DNA of 63,798 nt, the filler included, from Salisapilia sapeloensis CBS 127946 (Eukaryota > Protista > Oomycota): assembly GCA_023334545.1 (NCBI GenBank). It is 5 parts of 5 records of this genome, joined end to end, with 100 filler letters (N's around TTAATTAATTAA, not from the genome) between each part and the next. Parts side by side here need not be neighbours in the genome. Positions count along the whole stretch, not along the records: positions 1 to 20,436 come from JAADVB010000300.1; 4 more parts are not named here. One strand, given 5' to 3'. Of this stretch, positions 1 to 20,436 are shown one piece after another (within the stretch, counting starts at the first letter, position 1; each line of letters opens with the position of its first letter). Both the position numbers and the translations under genes were made by a program. The notes beneath the pieces were generated by a model, which did not search any database, was not told where the DNA came from, and worked only from the letters and a program-made list of their open reading frames with translations.

Positions 1-65
1 AGCTCAGATGGTAGAGCGTTCGCTTAGCATGCGAAAGGTACTGGGATCGATACCCAGCTTCTCCA
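1..65 (+). tRNA. tRNA-Ala(AGC), 5' end truncated by the window/contig start
   Basis: D-arm AGCTCAGATGGTAGAGC; anticodon stem TTCGC/GCGAA with loop TT-AGC-AT; T-arm CTGGG-ATCGATA-CCCAG (A54-type loop typical of eukaryotic tRNA-Ala); acceptor 3' strand CTTCTCC (U70 Ala determinant) plus discriminator A65. About 8 nt of the 5' end are missing. Confidence 0.92.
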
Positions 66-66
66 G

Positions 67-138
67 GCGTGTGTAGTATAGTGGTTAGTACCCTTCGTTG
101 TGGTCGAAGTATCCTCGGTTCGAATCCGGGCACGCGCA
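67..138 (+). tRNA. tRNA-His(GTG), preceded by a genomic G at 66 (G-1 position)
   Basis: Acceptor GCGTGTG/CACGCGC plus discriminator A138; D-arm GTAT-AGTGGTTA-GTAC; anticodon stem CTTCG/CGAAG with loop TT-GTG-GT; T-arm CTCGG-TTCGAAT-CCGGG. Confidence 0.95.
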
Positions 139-147
139 TTCTTTTTT
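139..147 (+). terminator. RNA polymerase III oligo-T terminator after tRNA-His
   Basis: TTCTTTTTT directly after the His discriminator. No T-run lies between the Ala and His genes. Confidence 0.75.
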
Positions 148-2569
148 GTAGGGTGAAACAATTTCTTTGCCAAGAATAGCTGAAGAACATGCTCTTTGCG
201 AGATGAATGAAGCTGTCAAGCGAATTTTTAGTCTTGATGTGTAGGATAAGAAAATTTGAATACAGATTGGAGGCGTGTGGACGGCTTCAGCTATCCACAA
301 CTCCACAACCTCGCTTCCTCGCATACTCGTAATGCTTCCTTATAGCTTTAGAAGGCCTAGTTTCATCACGTCTAACCAGGTATCCGCTGTCACTGAAGTG
401 GCCATTAAATGACCTCATGGTATATGACAGCGCGAAAGTAGAAATGCTAAGCGAGGTTTTCATTCAAAGAGGACATCAATGTTGAATAATAATCCTATTT
501 TGCTCTTTCATCATCGACAAATGCAATAAGGCCAATGTTGAGAAGCAAACAGCATGAGAATACCCTCGTTGTCTACACGAACTCAGCGGATCAATTGTTA
601 AATATTGCTGTCATAGAATTGTAAACCGCATGGAGGACGACGAAAGGCTTACTGCCAAAGAATAAAAACCAAATTTCCGTACACTTACAATGCTCCTACT
701 ATCGTCGCTTTGATGATCTACCCTTTGCTTCCATACACCTTTCTCCAATATAATCTGAGCTGACTGAAAACAATTTATTTAAATCTGGTCGGTACGTGAC
801 GAATCCATTATCAATGGATCGACTTCCCGATTGTCGTTTGATAGAGGTAGAATTTCAGTTAGAGCGAGGGGCATCGACATCCTCCTAGCGCTTCAAGTTC
901 AATCTTCGGGAAGATGTACAGAAAGGTGAAAGTGAATAGCCATGCAGCATCGTTTTTATGGGTTGATACCGTCGCCCACTCGACACTTGACACGTACCGA
1001 ATGATATATTAATCTCCCGACGATAGAGATGAGCCAATGTGTATGTAGCATATGTTCAAGGGATTGTATGCGAGACTTTCGCTAGCGAGTGACACAGCAC
1101 GCGCATCGAGCACACGAATCGTCCATGCTTGAGTTCAAGTATGCTCCATACGTGTCACTTTACCCAATTATTCACTACAAGAGAGAATTACTTTCAAGGG
1201 TATGGATGCCGCGATGTACACGAATTTTATTGAGCATTATCAGGCACGTTCATGACGTGGAGTAAACACAGGTTAGTAGCCATGGCCGAGGTGCGGACTG
1301 TACATCTTTTGATTGCAGTCAGAGGAATACCTGTAGTTTCTACCGAAAGATGGGTGCGATGGCCAGGATACTCGTGCAAACGTCAAAGATACCTATAACC
1401 AGATCGTACTTGCGTAAAGGGCAGATGGAAGGCACGACGACGATACTTCAAACGACGCAAGGAGAGGACGCAAAAGGGACAATTGCATGCATACTTCCGA
1501 CGACCGCGTTTCTTTGCAGCATTGAATTGATCTCGCGTGCCACCTCATGTCGTTCGAACGCCAGTATGAAAGACCCTACTGGCATCAGGGGATTGCCTCA
1601 AGACGTAAAGAGCAGTCCAACATCAACTGGATTTGCCCTGCAGACTTGGTGGTTACAAATTGTCCACGCCCCTTCTCTCACTTAGTACTGACCACCTCCA
1701 CATGCCCGCTAGTTGAACAATCATGGCAAGTATCTCTGCCGACAAATTTTCACGATAAATTTAGCCAAGACCACCGATAGGTAGTATCTCATTCCAAAAA
1801 CGAACGGACTGCCATAGGTGCTTCAAGATTGTCTCCTGAGAAGCTATCGATGGAGGTGGTTGTACCCATTTCCGTGCTATTTCTGGACGAAGTGTCTGCG
1901 ATATCTGGAGTAGCCAATCAAGATGCGCTGACCCCCGACTTTGTGACTAGGGTTCACACCAGGACGAAGACCGTGCGCACTCGATGCTCACGACGAAGGG
2001 CAAGGAAAGCGAGGGAGAAAAGTGCATGCAGTTTCGCAGGAGCGATCCTGCACAAGCAAAGAACGCTTCGTAGGAATCTCTACCGTCCACTAAATACAAA
2101 ACGCTTCGCATCCATGTCACTAGTAGAGAACCCTTTCCAATATTTTATTCACGCTATATAGAAATTTTCGTCAAGTCGGTGTCTGGTCACGAGGTGTATC
2201 CTCCTCCAGCTCTCCCATCCTTCCCAGGATCGCCATTCTTGCGTCATGGCAAGGCACAAGCTACGCTCGCCAGTCAAACGCGAAATCCCGGTCTACGTCA
2301 ACAAGGGTGTTGGTCGATATCCAGTTTCTCCATAGATCTTCGACAAAGTATAGCTGCTCCTTTTCTACTTTTCATAGTCTCTCTTTTCTTAGCGAAATCC
2401 ATCGTTACATACATGCGACGAGGCAAGTCTAGAATACCGTCAGCTGGAGAGACAGGGGCACCTGTAAAGGCTTCAAAGCCATGGGCCGAAGCCATCTCAT
2501 TATTGTTTTTGCTTCGCAAGACCCAAAGCGACAGGAAAAAAGCGCAACACAGAGAAAAACTGCTTGAAT

Positions 2570-3082
2570 ATGCAGAGCCCCATGACCGATACGAGCAACA
2601 ACCCGAGCTCGCCTGTACCGGAGGAACTTCGATGCTGCTACTCCTCCAAGCGTTGCGATAACCCGCGCACCAACAAAAAGAGCGGTGGCTTGCACAAGTT
2701 CTGCGCCTACCACCGTGACAAGGCCAATCGTAACCAGATGCGTCTGGATCACCGACGTCGGTTGCAGAAGAAGCAGGCACAGGCGTTAGAGCAGCGCGCC
2801 AAGCAAGCTGCATTTGCTCAGTACAACGCGCCACTTGCGCCTATCAGCACCCCCGACTTTAAAATCTACGACGCACCAGAGGCATCATCACCCACATACT
2901 GTGAGTTCCCAGTGGACGAACCGATGCAGTTTGACGAACAGGAGCTCCAGATCCTGGACGAATTACTGTTCCATGGCGAAGAAGATGTCAAGATGGAGGA
3001 ACCACAGGCTGAGTGTGATTGCCACGAATGCGCAAGCTACGTTGGTCGACGGCGAACCCCAGCGGCCATTCGCAACTATTAA
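2570..3082 (+). CDS. Oomycete-type hypothetical protein with a Cys/His motif (putative Zn-binding/DNA-binding) followed by a coiled coil
   Basis: ATG at 2570, intronless ORF. Motif RCCYSSKRCDNPR..KSGGLHKFCAYHRDKANRNQMRLDHRRR followed by a basic/Q helix and an acidic tail. Confidence 0.7.
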   Translation: MQSPMTDTSNNPSSPVPEELRCCYSSKRCDNPRTNKKSGGLHKFCAYHRDKANRNQMRLDHRRRLQKKQAQALEQRAKQAAFAQYNAPLAPISTPDFKIYDAPEASSPTYCEFPVDEPMQFDEQELQILDELLFHGEEDVKMEEPQAECDCHECASYVGRRRTPAAIRNY

Positions 3083-8200: not shown

Positions 8201-10267
8201 CTACGCAAAGTGCTTCAATTTCTTCGTTGGTGACTCAATGTCGCGTAGATCTCTTCCAGAGAATTTGCGCTGCTGCTTCGGAGGTAACTTGTGCTTCCAA
8301 AGAGTGCAGTTCGCTAGGTATTTCGGACACTTGTCATGACGGTTCGTTCCTTTGCATTTCTCGTTTCCAGTCTTCTCGAAGCCTTCACACCATGTCCATT
8401 GGTAGTGTTCACAACTACGAATCTTCGTTCCTTCAAAAGTTGTCGGAACTGCTCGGACGAGTACAGGAGATATGTCTTCCATTAACTGTTTCTCTAGAGC
8501 CGTTGGCTCGTACTTCTTTCCGTGACTGGCACAGTAAGCCGAATGCGCTCGTCTCTTTGCTTCAGTACAGCGATTGCATATCTGAAAGGAGCTCATAAAC
8601 TTTTCCAGGTTGATATACCCGTCATTAGCTGTGTCCAGGAGCTCAAACGTTTGCTGCCATTCAGGCGAGACAGTTACCGCTTGACTGAAAAGATCGTCGC
8701 CATTTTCCTTATCAAACGCCTCACGAATTTGATGACGCTCCATCATAAGATGAAATTGAGGTAACGTCAGAGTATTCGTAGTTGGATCACAGAACGTGTG
8801 GAATATCTGGACGAGTTTAAAGTCAGAGATATCTGGTGTGATAGATATCTTCGAAATCTTCGCTGCACCCGTCGTTGGATGTGGTGGTCCGATCACAGAC
8901 GTCGTAATGACCGGCGGTGGTGCTTTACCACCTAATCCAACCGTTTTCGTCTGGCGTGGCTTTTGAACGTCCGAATTGATGAGAGACATAGGCACTACTT
9001 GTTCCGGAGTAAACGTCTGCATGAAGTCGCTTTGTTTAAAAGATGTCTTTGCCATTGTCATCGCAGCAACAGCCTTTGCTTGGTAATTAGCTGCTTGACT
9101 AGCAAGCAAAGCATTCTTTTGTGCGGCAGACAATTGAACTGCTTGCTCCAGAACATTTGCATCAAAGTTGCTTAAGTTGTCCAGAGATGAAATTGGGTAG
9201 TAGGGCATGTTGTTACTTTCGTGTGCTGTCATTTGTGCTTGGGCATACATACTAGCCACCTCATCTGAATTGTTCAACGAGTAGTCTAAAGAACCTTGAT
9301 CTGGAACTTTATGAGGTAGTTGGAAGTACTGCCCAAAGTAGCTTTCGCTTTGCATCATAGACGGCTGAATATTTGGATTAGGCGCAATCTTTCGCATGCG
9401 GTTGCTACCACTCTTACCGAGACTTGACTTACTTGACTCTTTCTGCAGAAGCTCCGACTCTGCTTGCATCATTGCGAATATGTCTTCTTCCGTAAGAGAT
9501 GGAATATCTGCGTCCGATTCATATTGAGACACAAGATGATCGTCTTCTTTCCCAGAGCTTTTGACATGGTACCGAGATAGATCCTCTCCACTTGGACTTG
9601 TAAGTCGCATCCCCTTCTCAAAGGACGACATTCGCAACGGCGACCAGGCATCTGACTGAGGCGTCGATGCAGCGTTTATACGCTGCGTGATAATTGGAGG
9701 AGGCCTATTGCTTGCACCCATTGATGCCCACGCAGTATTATCATCCAAGCCAGCAGTACCCAAAATGTTTTGGTCATTTGATGACACTCGATCATTTCCT
9801 TCGTCTTCATCTTGTGTACCATCGGTTTCTGCATCCTGTCTGCGATAGCTGAATGTTGTTTCCTCTACCTTGACTATACAGGCACGTGTAGTTAGTCGAC
9901 AATGCCGATTAGATAAGCAAATCATGTTGTGGTAACCTTGCTCCGTTTCGTTTGATGCACTCTTGTCAGCGCTTACTTTGGCAATGGTAACATCAGACTT
10001 CTTCGGCGATTCCTCTTGTAAGAAGTCATCAAATAGTTTTGCGTCATCGCTTTGCTCGTTCAGAAATGCAGTTGCAACGGAATCCGACTTCCACCAATCT
10101 AAATAAGATGAGCAATGATAGGAGCTGGCAACGAATCGGCACATAGGATGTGTACCTTCACCATCGATAGCTTCGCCATCAGTTGTAGAGAAGAAGGCTT
10201 CGAAATCCCACAACTCATCGGTCACCTCTGGACTACTTGTCAGATTGGTCTCTGCAGCACTTGTCAT
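8201..10267 (-). CDS. Hypothetical protein with EF-hand-like helices and a Cys/His-rich C-terminal domain; probably two introns
   Basis: Long ORF with likely ATG at 10267. EF-hand-like FELLDTANDGYINLEKF; C-terminal CNRC..C..CEHYQWTWC..C...RHDKCPKYLANCTLWKH. Intron-like segments at 10099-10155 and 9874-9936. Confidence 0.75.
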   Translation of the reverse strand: MTSAAETNLTSSPEVTDELWDFEAFFSTTDGEAIDGEGTHPMCRFVASSYHCSSYLDWWKSDSVATAFLNEQSDDAKLFDDFLQEESPKKSDVTIAKVSADKSASNETEQGYHNMICLSNRHCRLTTRACIVKVEETTFSYRRQDAETDGTQDEDEGNDRVSSNDQNILGTAGLDDNTAWASMGASNRPPPIITQRINAASTPQSDAWSPLRMSSFEKGMRLTSPSGEDLSRYHVKSSGKEDDHLVSQYESDADIPSLTEEDIFAMMQAESELLQKESSKSSLGKSGSNRMRKIAPNPNIQPSMMQSESYFGQYFQLPHKVPDQGSLDYSLNNSDEVASMYAQAQMTAHESNNMPYYPISSLDNLSNFDANVLEQAVQLSAAQKNALLASQAANYQAKAVAAMTMAKTSFKQSDFMQTFTPEQVVPMSLINSDVQKPRQTKTVGLGGKAPPPVITTSVIGPPHPTTGAAKISKISITPDISDFKLVQIFHTFCDPTTNTLTLPQFHLMMERHQIREAFDKENGDDLFSQAVTVSPEWQQTFELLDTANDGYINLEKFMSSFQICNRCTEAKRRAHSAYCASHGKKYEPTALEKQLMEDISPVLVRAVPTTFEGTKIRSCEHYQWTWCEGFEKTGNEKCKGTNRHDKCPKYLANCTLWKHKLPPKQQRKFSGRDLRDIESPTKKLKHFA

Positions 10268-10738
10268 GGATAAAAGCTCCGTCGATGGTATTACGCCGAT
10301 AGGTGACGAGAGATTTTGTGTCAACACTTGTCGATGGCAGCTCAACGCGAAGTGTTTATAAAGAGATCGCAACGCTGTAAGTCATAAATAGACCTCTGCA
10401 CAAAGATACAACAGTCTTATCTCATTTTCGTTCACTTCCGTTTACATTCGTTCTATGTTTAGCAGGCAAATTTGAAGTCTCGCTAGCTTTCTTTACAGCC
10501 TAGTTCACATCTACATTCAGCAATACAGACAACCAAGTAGATTCCCCGTTCAATCAGCAGCTTTTCATCATTTCCCTGTTTCAGTTATTGCTTTTACTTT
10601 CATCTAGATCTGGGTCATGATGCTATGAACTAAACCGCGCTTCCTGACTCTAAAAGCATAGAGTTTCTATGAAAGGATGATCAAAATAGCTTTCCGTTTC
10701 GAGTATGTTCATAGTAGCACGTAGCTTGTACTTTCAAA

Positions 10739-19024: not shown

Positions 19025-20299
19025 CACCTTGTACTTCTTTTCAAATTATCGACTGGCAGTGTGAGAATGATAAATTGGAAAATGCCTCGTCTCCTACTAG
19101 TAGATCACCACCGAGTATGTACTCATCATGATTTGTCGAGTTTGGATACATGGAGACTAATACAGAAAGTAAGACAAAAGAATGTTGTTGTTGCGAAGGT
19201 TTCAAAATACATATAGCGACACATTTATTGACGTGGGCTCTGAAACCACCAAATGCGAGCTCAACCATTTTGAATAATCAAGGGTGTATTGCTCGTCATC
19301 CCCAGATTCGAAAGGCTAAAGATTAGTCGCAAGCGAATTCCAGAGCGTGCGACGATCAAGTCGCTGCTTCTCAATTATGCATAAACCAAGATTTAGAACC
19401 ATCTATATTCGTTTCTAGGTTGCCATTCGTTTTGCGTGCCTAGCAAATCATTGAGGTTGGTGACCTTGAAGTCGTGGCGTTGGGATGTCGCGTGGGAGGT
19501 ACTGCGGTCTGGTGCGCACATATCGTGATGCCATTTCTTGAGGCTGATGATATTGCGTACTATAGAGTATCAATTGTGTTGGTAGACTAGTCTTGCTGTC
19601 ATTCGGAGCTCCTGTCCTCTGTGGTTGTCGTGCCTTCCGAACTGATGCGAACTCGTGCTTTATGTTGTAGTGAATAGCAACACTGAGACGGAAATGTGAA
19701 AGCACCAGCCATATTATAATACATTCTGCAAGTTACCAAATCGTGTTTGAGCGCCGTATAATCTGGATTATGTAAAGTCGCTTCAGTCATTAGAAGCAAC
19801 AGCTCGATTGATACAACAAAAGAGAGATTACGAGCAAAGCAAAGAGATCTATTTTCATATGCAACTTGCCCTTTGTAGTGCAAAAATAGATTTAGGTCGC
19901 CGTCGTGGGTCTCGTTTGTAATAGTAATCTGAAAACTTGGCCACGTACAAGGTGTATTCGCGTGTACGCATCAAAAGCAGGTAGAAAGATATAAAAGTAG
20001 TTGCGGAGTGTTACCTCTTCTGTTTTAGATGAATCTTCGCATACATATCCGACGTGGACTCGATAATGCTCCATCGAGTTGTTACTACCACTGGGGGTCA
20101 ATTCGTCTGGCGCTGAGTTTATGTATTGACCACTTCGAAAGTTATATATACAAAGTTTTGTATGTACAGACGTAAAGTAGATGCAGGGCGCACGTGGTGC
20201 ATGCATAAAGGGCAGCAAATTAAAGCAATTATATACATCCGGTAGTTTGAACATTGTAACTAAATTTATTATAATACATTTTGCTTCCACTTTCCATAT

Positions 20300-20380
20300 G
20301 ACAGCTTGGCCGAGTGGTTAAGGCGATAGACTAGAAATCTATTGGGGCAACCCGCGTGAGTTCAAATCTCACAGCTGTCG
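20300..20380 (+). tRNA. tRNA-Ser(AGA)
   Basis: Acceptor GACAGCT/AGCTGTC plus G discriminator; D-loop GGCCGAGTGGTTAAGGC; anticodon stem ATAGA/TCTAT with loop CT-AGA-AA; long variable arm; T-arm GTGAG-TTCAAAT-CTCAC; T-runs downstream. Confidence 0.95.
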
Positions 20381-20436
20381 AAATCTTTTGCTTTTTTGTC
20401 TTGTTACTTTCATGTTGCACAGATACTCTGGGTGCG

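Follow-up and report, generated by a model that had tools for sequence, protein, structure and literature searches.

In all domains of life, to our knowledge, it is chiefly by the guanosine at position -1 (G-1) that histidine tRNA is identified. Two established routes lead to it: in the bacterial type the base is retained by virtue of a G-1:C73 pair, and in eukaryotes Thg1 adds it. Caenorhabditis elegans (16 of 17 genes) and Bigelowiella natans, which lack Thg1, encode G-1 in nuclear tRNA-His genes that carry A73, and the mechanism by which the base is retained is unexplained (Rao & Jackman 2015, PMC4338351). Diatoms and several algae are without any Thg1/TLP protein, and the basis of tRNA-His identity in these organisms is undetermined (PMC3561963). 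The present analysis concerns a tRNA-Ala(AGC) gene and a tRNA-His(GTG) gene separated by a single G, located at positions 1-147 of a stretch of DNA from the oomycete Salisapilia sapeloensis CBS 127946 (assembly GCA_023334545.1; 63,798 nucleotides (nt) including filler, joined from five parts and hereafter called the window). In our best reading of the sequences compared, the spacer of this Ala-G-His pair would be kept at exactly one G by selection, as the G-1 identity nucleotide of tRNA-His.

The locus resembles those of C. elegans and B. natans in having a G at -1 of a nuclear gene, A73, this arrangement in essentially all copies, and a proposed Thg1-independent G-1. It differs in that no upstream tRNA has been described for those genes (PMC4338351), whereas here the discriminator of tRNA-Ala, standing directly before the G, offers a defined nuclease site, and in that the absence of Thg1 is documented for those organisms, whereas the present system is known from its tRNA genes alone. 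With bacterial and organellar tRNA-His it shares an encoded G at -1, which in their case is transcribed and kept rather than added; their retention, however, needs the G-1:C73 pair and an acceptor stem of 8 base pairs (bp), whereas A73 is present throughout here. In human mitochondria, tRNA-His, tRNA-Ser(AGY) and tRNA-Leu(CUN) abut, and 3' processing of the upstream tRNA sets the next 5' end. We propose that here, too, one cut at the 3' end of the upstream tRNA would make the downstream 5' end, but the mitochondrial genes are organellar rather than nuclear genes that RNA polymerase III (Pol III) transcribes, and they supply no G-1. The spacers of dimeric yeast tRNA genes measure 7-10 nt. Like these genes, the Ala-G-His pair has two tRNAs on one strand, a short terminator-free spacer and a predicted terminator after the second gene; unlike it, they have spacers devoid of identity function and a co-transcription that has been shown, whereas in the present pair an invariant 1-nt spacer coincides with an identity position and co-transcription would be expected from the layout. 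Examples are the tRNA-Ser/tRNA-Met-i gene of Schizosaccharomyces pombe and the tRNA-Arg/tRNA-Asp gene of Saccharomyces cerevisiae (Mao et al. 1980, cited in PMC9584435; PMC2566860). Finally, the tRNA-His of Nanoarchaeum equitans obtains its G-1 from transcription initiation, with no RNase P involved (PMC10100707). An encoded G-1 that requires neither Thg1 nor a shift of RNase P would be common to both systems, but the 5' end in N. equitans is a transcription start bearing a triphosphate, whereas a nuclease cut within a dimeric precursor is proposed here. Our literature searches returned no account of an Ala-G-His pair or of a G-1 made by tRNase Z, and the papers on tRNA fragments of Phytophthora infestans and P. 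sojae do not mention tRNA-His. Dimeric Pol III tRNA genes and nuclear-encoded G-1 with A73 are both known; their combination, in which an upstream discriminator abuts G-1 in many lineages, was not found described.

Anatomy and linkage of the Ala-G-His pair

The tRNA-Ala(AGC) gene occupies positions 1-65 of the plus strand and corresponds to tRNA positions 9-73, the first 8 nt being missing where the piece (probably the contig) begins inside the gene. It matches the Rfam model RF00005 at model positions 9-71 with 41.8 bits, and has its U70 at window position 62 and its discriminator A73 at position 65. The single spacer G, which is the proposed genome-encoded G-1 of tRNA-His, lies at position 66 of the same strand and belongs to neither cloverleaf; it stands opposite A73, with which it forms no Watson-Crick pair. 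It is followed at positions 67-138 (plus strand) by tRNA-His(GTG), 72 nt long and folding into a full cloverleaf, which was called by ARAGORN and scores 58.1 bits with Rfam; both tRNAs, including the 5'-truncated tRNA-Ala, are above the RF00005 gathering score of 29. The acceptor stem of tRNA-His runs from G67 to C137, its discriminator A138 is the eukaryote-type A73, and an internal A-box-like sequence and a perfect B-box (GGTTCGAATCC) are contained within the gene. Direct reading of the plus strand gives a trailer at positions 139-147, consisting of TTC and then six T (TTCTTTTTT), a Pol III terminator-like oligo-T that we predict to act as the terminator. This is the first run of at least four T since the start of the pair, none being present within positions 1-138. 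The layout is that of a dimeric Pol III gene, in which both tRNAs share a strand and an oligo-T follows the second but does not separate the two, and the Ala discriminator A65 immediately precedes G66, as in a punctuation-type arrangement. A scan for bacterial promoters and terminators, which is irrelevant to Pol III, found nothing. Minimum-free-energy folding of the dimer was uninformative (z = -0.53), and covariation was used instead.

The copy number of the pair was evaluated by aligning to window positions 1-700 the Logan contigs from X1, a DNA run of the same organism; the single-copy flank there has a depth of about 42. A 73-nt record comprising the entire tRNA-Ala reaches a depth of 323, or about 7.7 copies, while one unbranched 105-nt record, which extends from position 36 to 140 across A65-G66-G67, has a depth of 185, or about 4.4 copies. 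The 5' half of tRNA-His is covered by this 105-nt record only, and in a de Bruijn graph such sole coverage implies that the 3' part of Ala and the G stand before all His genes of this sequence. These His copies (about 4.4 by this record) combine a G at -1 with A73, as nearly all those of C. elegans do. The residual Ala depth of about 140 branches after A65 into ATCGAATCTTTTAC..., with a T-run of its own, which corresponds to about three solo Ala copies. In the source organism, Ala can stand alone and His does not. The repeat starts precisely at Ala +1 and the copies part ways 2-3 nt past A73 of His; the copies therefore share only the two genes and the G, and are not recent segmental duplicates. 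A contig from another organism (B) is identical to the window over positions 18-145 and has a different 3' flank.

These results bear on an earlier note, made from the sequence of the window alone. The anatomy that it had described, with tRNA-Ala ending at A65, a lone G66, tRNA-His starting at 67 and an oligo-T after it, is borne out by Infernal/Rfam, ARAGORN and direct reading. Among the ways in which its proposal could fall, the note had named a lack of the upstream Ala and the -1 G in other His copies, and a misassembly at the junction. The sole cover of the His 5' half by the 105-nt record indicates that the other copies keep both, and the junction is genuine, misassembly being ruled out by an unbranched unitig at 4.4 times the single-copy depth.

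A solo tRNA-Ala copy was also observed in two runs of the same organism whose libraries were guessed to be RNA (X2 and X4), inside contigs of about 1.8-2.0 kb with depths of 32-37. These contigs run on after A73 as ATCGAATCTTTTAC..., which read-through transcription or DNA carry-over could explain.

Conservation of the single G and its controls

Relatives were retrieved as DNA for 11 loci (L041-L051, about 8 distinct sequences). In each of them an Ala(AGC) of 73 nt is separated by one G from a His(GTG) that is 72 nt long and has A73. Their contigs have G+C contents of 26-52%, and two of them carry tandem units (L046, L042). The spacer G is invariant in 8 of the 8 aligned loci, as well as in L050 and L051; the string TCTCCA-G-G is unchanged in the alignment, and on either side the flanks, ending at Ala -1 and starting at His +74, cannot be aligned. 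When the two cloverleaves are laid over the alignment, 96.7% of the cells are paired and 13 pairs change on both sides, a result reached by none of 500 shuffles, and controls in which the structure was slid are only 27-52% paired. Covariation is present in every His helix but the D stem, which is invariant. Such intact and covarying cloverleaves indicate that both tRNAs are functional genes under selection that have diverged considerably, while the lone G between them has not changed; they also rule out a pseudogene or a short interspersed nuclear element. The discriminator of tRNA-His is A in the window (position 138) and in all fetched relatives, so an 8-bp acceptor stem closed by G-1:C73 is found in none of them. 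A run of four to seven T lies within about 15 nt after His in 5 of the 6 fully flanked relatives of this alignment (A1), and also in L050 and L051. If G66 functions as part of tRNA-His, a single G would be expected to stay invariant in this way while both tRNAs and the flanks diverge. We consider it very probable that the Ala-G-His pair functions as a conserved unit and that its G spacer is under selection.

Of the 7 full-length copies of the paired tRNA-Ala(AGC) (L041, L042 and L046-L049, in columns 37/98 of A1, and L050), 6 are mismatched at U6-U67 in the acceptor stem. In L050, a contig of 545 nt, the paired Ala has T67 and hence the mismatch, and a solo Ala on the opposite strand has A67 and is paired at this position.

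A larger sample of relatives was reached through the minus strand of the pair, which is an open frame whose ATG is derived from C72 and A73 of His and the first T of the trailer. Because this strand is open, gene callers have deposited spurious 'proteins' in public collections. A word-indexed search returned 28 open reading frames (ORFs) covering His, the junction and Ala in frame, and HMMER, run exhaustively over 1.84 billion representatives, gave 103 hits. Both halves are held by 63 ORFs according to a strict signature (42 distinct cores), or by 73 according to alignment. The junction codon, which is the reverse complement of Ala position 73, G-1 and His +1, encodes proline (CCN) in 63 of 63 ORFs by the strict signature and in 73 of 73 by alignment; a codon that is always proline fixes both -1 and +1 as G and the spacer length as 1 nt exactly. 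The ORFs that show this constancy are otherwise diverse, with seven classes of His 5' acceptor strand, five of His anticodon stem and seven of Ala 3' acceptor strand. The same searches gave ORFs with Ala only, including plant-type Ala arrays, and a few with His only (P0272, P0284), from which it follows that the method is not blind to other arrangements. In total, more than 100 'hypothetical proteins' of 59-457 amino acids (aa) (P0177-P0290) turn out to be tRNA-Ala, tRNA-His or arrays of them translated from the reverse strand; they are annotation artefacts and were used as an index of gene order. A separate pattern scan of metagenomes demanded GGTTAG in the D loop, so that relatives of the GGTCAG type were missed, and its output consisted mostly of metazoan-like His genes, 46-tRNA clusters, and the contigs L004, L026 and L039.

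Other tRNA pairs and solo genes serve as controls for the spacer. The base following solo Ala copies is A in the source organism and T in L050, not G, which argues that Ala itself does not need a G. In metagenome-assembled genomes of giant viruses, the two genes of a homologous Phe-His pair are separated by C in three contigs and by AAATT in another (L053, L054, L055, L057), and this is how a spacer free of constraint looks. Tight clusters of 46-47 tRNA genes, distributed over both strands of eukaryote-like metagenome contigs of about 6-7 kb (L003, L008, L009, L028), contain 0-nt junctions between non-His tRNAs (Cys|Asp, Ser|Gly) and an overlap of 1 nt between Ser and Asn. The tRNA-His of these clusters has an A at -1 after a spacer of 67 nt, and a tRNA-Val lies 2-7 nt downstream of it, the same pair being present in L010. 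The 0-nt junctions of the metagenomic 46-tRNA clusters indicate that the earlier note overstated the rarity of abutting nuclear tRNA genes, which in some protists are not rare.

A single G before tRNA-His was also encountered with other upstream elements. Two virus-like IMG/VR contigs (L052, L056) have a tRNA-Ile(TAT), one G and a tRNA-His with A73. At positions 11659-11900 of L004, a 59-kb contig with a G+C content of 32% and an ORF for an EF-Tu-like GTPase at 9416-10459, a tRNA-like element is followed by G, a His with A73 and, after 0 nt, a Thr(AGT); the element was called by ARAGORN at a relaxed threshold only and has an odd anticodon arm, and the contig may be viral. The contig L039 has an ORF for Peptidase_M15 at 525-986 and, at positions 1960-2104, a tRNA-His with an A2-G71 mismatch, preceded by one G and by a degenerate Ala-like tRNA that scores 25.7 bits (below threshold) and retains G3:U70; the Ala-G-His pair is probably present here as a copy that is decaying or carried by a virus. 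Atlas and Pfam comparisons suggest that L004 and L039 are virus-like. The Ile-G-His and element-G-His arrangements, which come from single lineages and are of uncertain standing, hint that the 1-nt G trick recurs with other upstream tRNAs.

Possible origin of the histidine tRNA 5' end

We hypothesise that Pol III, acting through the internal promoters of Ala and/or His, would transcribe the pair into a single Ala-G-His precursor ending at the T-run. Cleavage by tRNase Z leaves a 3'-OH on the upstream tRNA and a 5'-phosphate on the downstream piece. One endonucleolytic cut between A65 and G66, the usual tRNase Z site of tRNA-Ala, would therefore generate two ends at once, namely an Ala 3'-OH ready for the addition of CCA and a 5'-monophosphate G-1 on tRNA-His. 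The one-base 'leader' thus formed would be a poor substrate for RNase P, so that G-1 would stay opposite A73 and Thg1 would not be needed. For the protein-only RNase P PRORP3, a 1-nt leader is cleaved 10-fold more slowly (PMC4797305), which implies that G-1 would be protected. That G66 is a genome-encoded G-1, freed when the 3' end of Ala is cut once, probably by tRNase Z, has in our estimation about an even chance. We infer co-transcription, the cut site, the enzyme, the retention of G-1 and the independence from Thg1 from the gene sequences. The interpretation given in the earlier note, a Thg1-independent route with an encoded G-1, appears to be partly supported: the other His copies and the junction bear it out, and the G proved invariant in the environmental pairs, a comparison that goes beyond what the note had asked, but it had overlooked the precedent of nuclear G-1 with A73 in C. 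elegans and B. natans, which lack Thg1 (PMC4338351). It can tentatively be proposed, with a likelihood that falls a little short of even, that an oomycete-like lineage and many environmental relatives use a third route by which eukaryotes establish tRNA-His identity, in which formation of the 5' end would be handed to the tRNase Z of a fused upstream tRNA-Ala, yielding pG-1 opposite A73 with neither Thg1 nor a shift of RNase P.

In known yeast dimeric precursors, it is RNase P that separates the two tRNAs. A canonical route can be envisaged along these lines, whereby the pair would be co-transcribed, RNase P would cut between G66 and G67, tRNase Z or an exonuclease would take the lone G off the 3' end of Ala, and G-1 would then be supplied by Thg1, the spacer G being kept for processing efficiency or minimal spacing. 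Such processing is the default in most eukaryotes (PMC6471195), and since A73 cannot pair with G-1, nothing obvious would redirect RNase P. It is weakened mainly because the spacer is invariant in both identity and length: a G-1 that is added anew would leave both of them free, yet a single G is present in every one of the 63-73 divergent pairs. Unconstrained Phe-His pairs vary (C, AAATT), other abutting pairs have 0 nt between them, and solo Ala has no need of a G. We regard this route as unlikely, though it is to be taken seriously. A different combination would have G66 kept as G-1, with the cut between A65 and G66 made not by tRNase Z but by RNase P (a ribonucleoprotein or the protein-only PRORP) shifted one base upstream. 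Shifts of this kind are known for bacteria and organelles and have been proposed for C. elegans (PMC4338351, PMC6471195), and PRORP3 is flexible in its selection of sites (PMC4797305). The known shift, however, requires the G-1:C73 pair, whereas every copy here has A73, and it would offer no reason for the constant fusion of His to an upstream tRNA with its discriminator exactly at the cut site; we therefore find it improbable.

The pair could reflect mere adjacency, if tRNA-His were transcribed alone from an internal promoter, starting in the 3' part of Ala, which would then be an ordinary leader, or if the pair were held together by array amplification. The A-box-like and perfect B-box sequences of His are compatible with the former, while the latter is consistent with the amplification of oomycete tRNA genes as dimeric or trimeric array units (PMC9584435) and with the tandem units of L046 and L042. 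Amplification, however, works within genomes and cannot account for a 1-nt spacer that is invariant across lineages amid randomised flanks, and the copies of the source organism have nothing in common beyond the two genes, so that mere adjacency is very unlikely. Alternatively, tRNA-His might need no G-1 at all, owing to a non-canonical histidyl-tRNA synthetase as in Acanthamoeba or Trypanosoma, and the G would be an inert spacer. Eukaryotes with such a synthetase exist (PMC3561963, PMC4338351), but an inert base would not remain G in every lineage examined, and this explanation is scarcely credible.

Several considerations weigh against the proposal that G66 is retained as G-1 after a cut at the 3' end of Ala. 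Even a leader of 1 nt is cleaved by RNase P, albeit more slowly, and the invariance of the G could reflect a processing preference, for the first trailer base in the case of tRNase Z or for the -1 base in that of RNase P, rather than retention. With its own A and B boxes, tRNA-His could be transcribed from within Ala, and L046 has no T-run within 45 nt past His. The relatives are environmental sequences without taxonomic assignment. The linkage of Ala and His in the source organism is deduced from Logan contigs, which lose rare variants, and X1 may be the very sample behind the assembly. Lastly, the sole junction-spanning contig from a library guessed to be RNA (X3, organism B; 151 nt, depth 4) spans positions 18-145, passes runs of four and five T, and may be DNA.

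If it is true, the proposed cleavage at the 3' end of Ala would be a concrete answer to the question of how some Thg1-lacking protists keep G-1, with one cut giving two mature ends. It would bear on two open questions, the identity of tRNA-His in diatoms and algae devoid of Thg1 (PMC3561963) and the retention of G-1 opposite A73 in C. elegans (PMC4338351), and it would offer a compact natural design for the expression of tRNA-His with G-1 in the absence of Thg1, for example in orthogonal translation systems. The pair may also serve as a marker for the annotation of tRNA-His in stramenopile genomes. The comparisons themselves indicate that the single G is under selection across many lineages, and they allow over a hundred database 'hypothetical proteins' to be recognised as reverse-strand tRNA artefacts.

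Genomic setting of the pair

The window is nuclear eukaryotic DNA with a G+C content of about 46%, and its genes include a glucosidase II beta-like gene, a kinase-like gene and a P450 gene. The best 120 named relatives of the P450 are all from oomycetes (Globisporangium, Pythium, Phytophthora), with identities of 42-54%, and the top named relative of the glucosidase II beta-like protein is from Phytophthora, with 38% identity. None of the proteins encoded in the window was itself present in the public collections. The source is accordingly placed as an oomycete-like stramenopile for which no close relative has been sequenced. The ordinary eukaryotic neighbours of the pair, the glucosidase II beta-like gene and the P450 with its best matches in oomycetes, rule out that the window is organellar or viral in origin. 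At positions 20299-20381 lies an ordinary monocistronic tRNA-Ser(AGA), followed by runs of four and six T and with no tRNA neighbour within its piece. The closest ORF of at least 120 aa to the tRNA pair, besides two overlapping ORFs at 2179-2834, is found at positions 2564-3082 of the plus strand; it encodes 172 aa, starts with MNMQSP and contains a Cys/His-rich stretch, CCYSSKRC...KFCAYHR.
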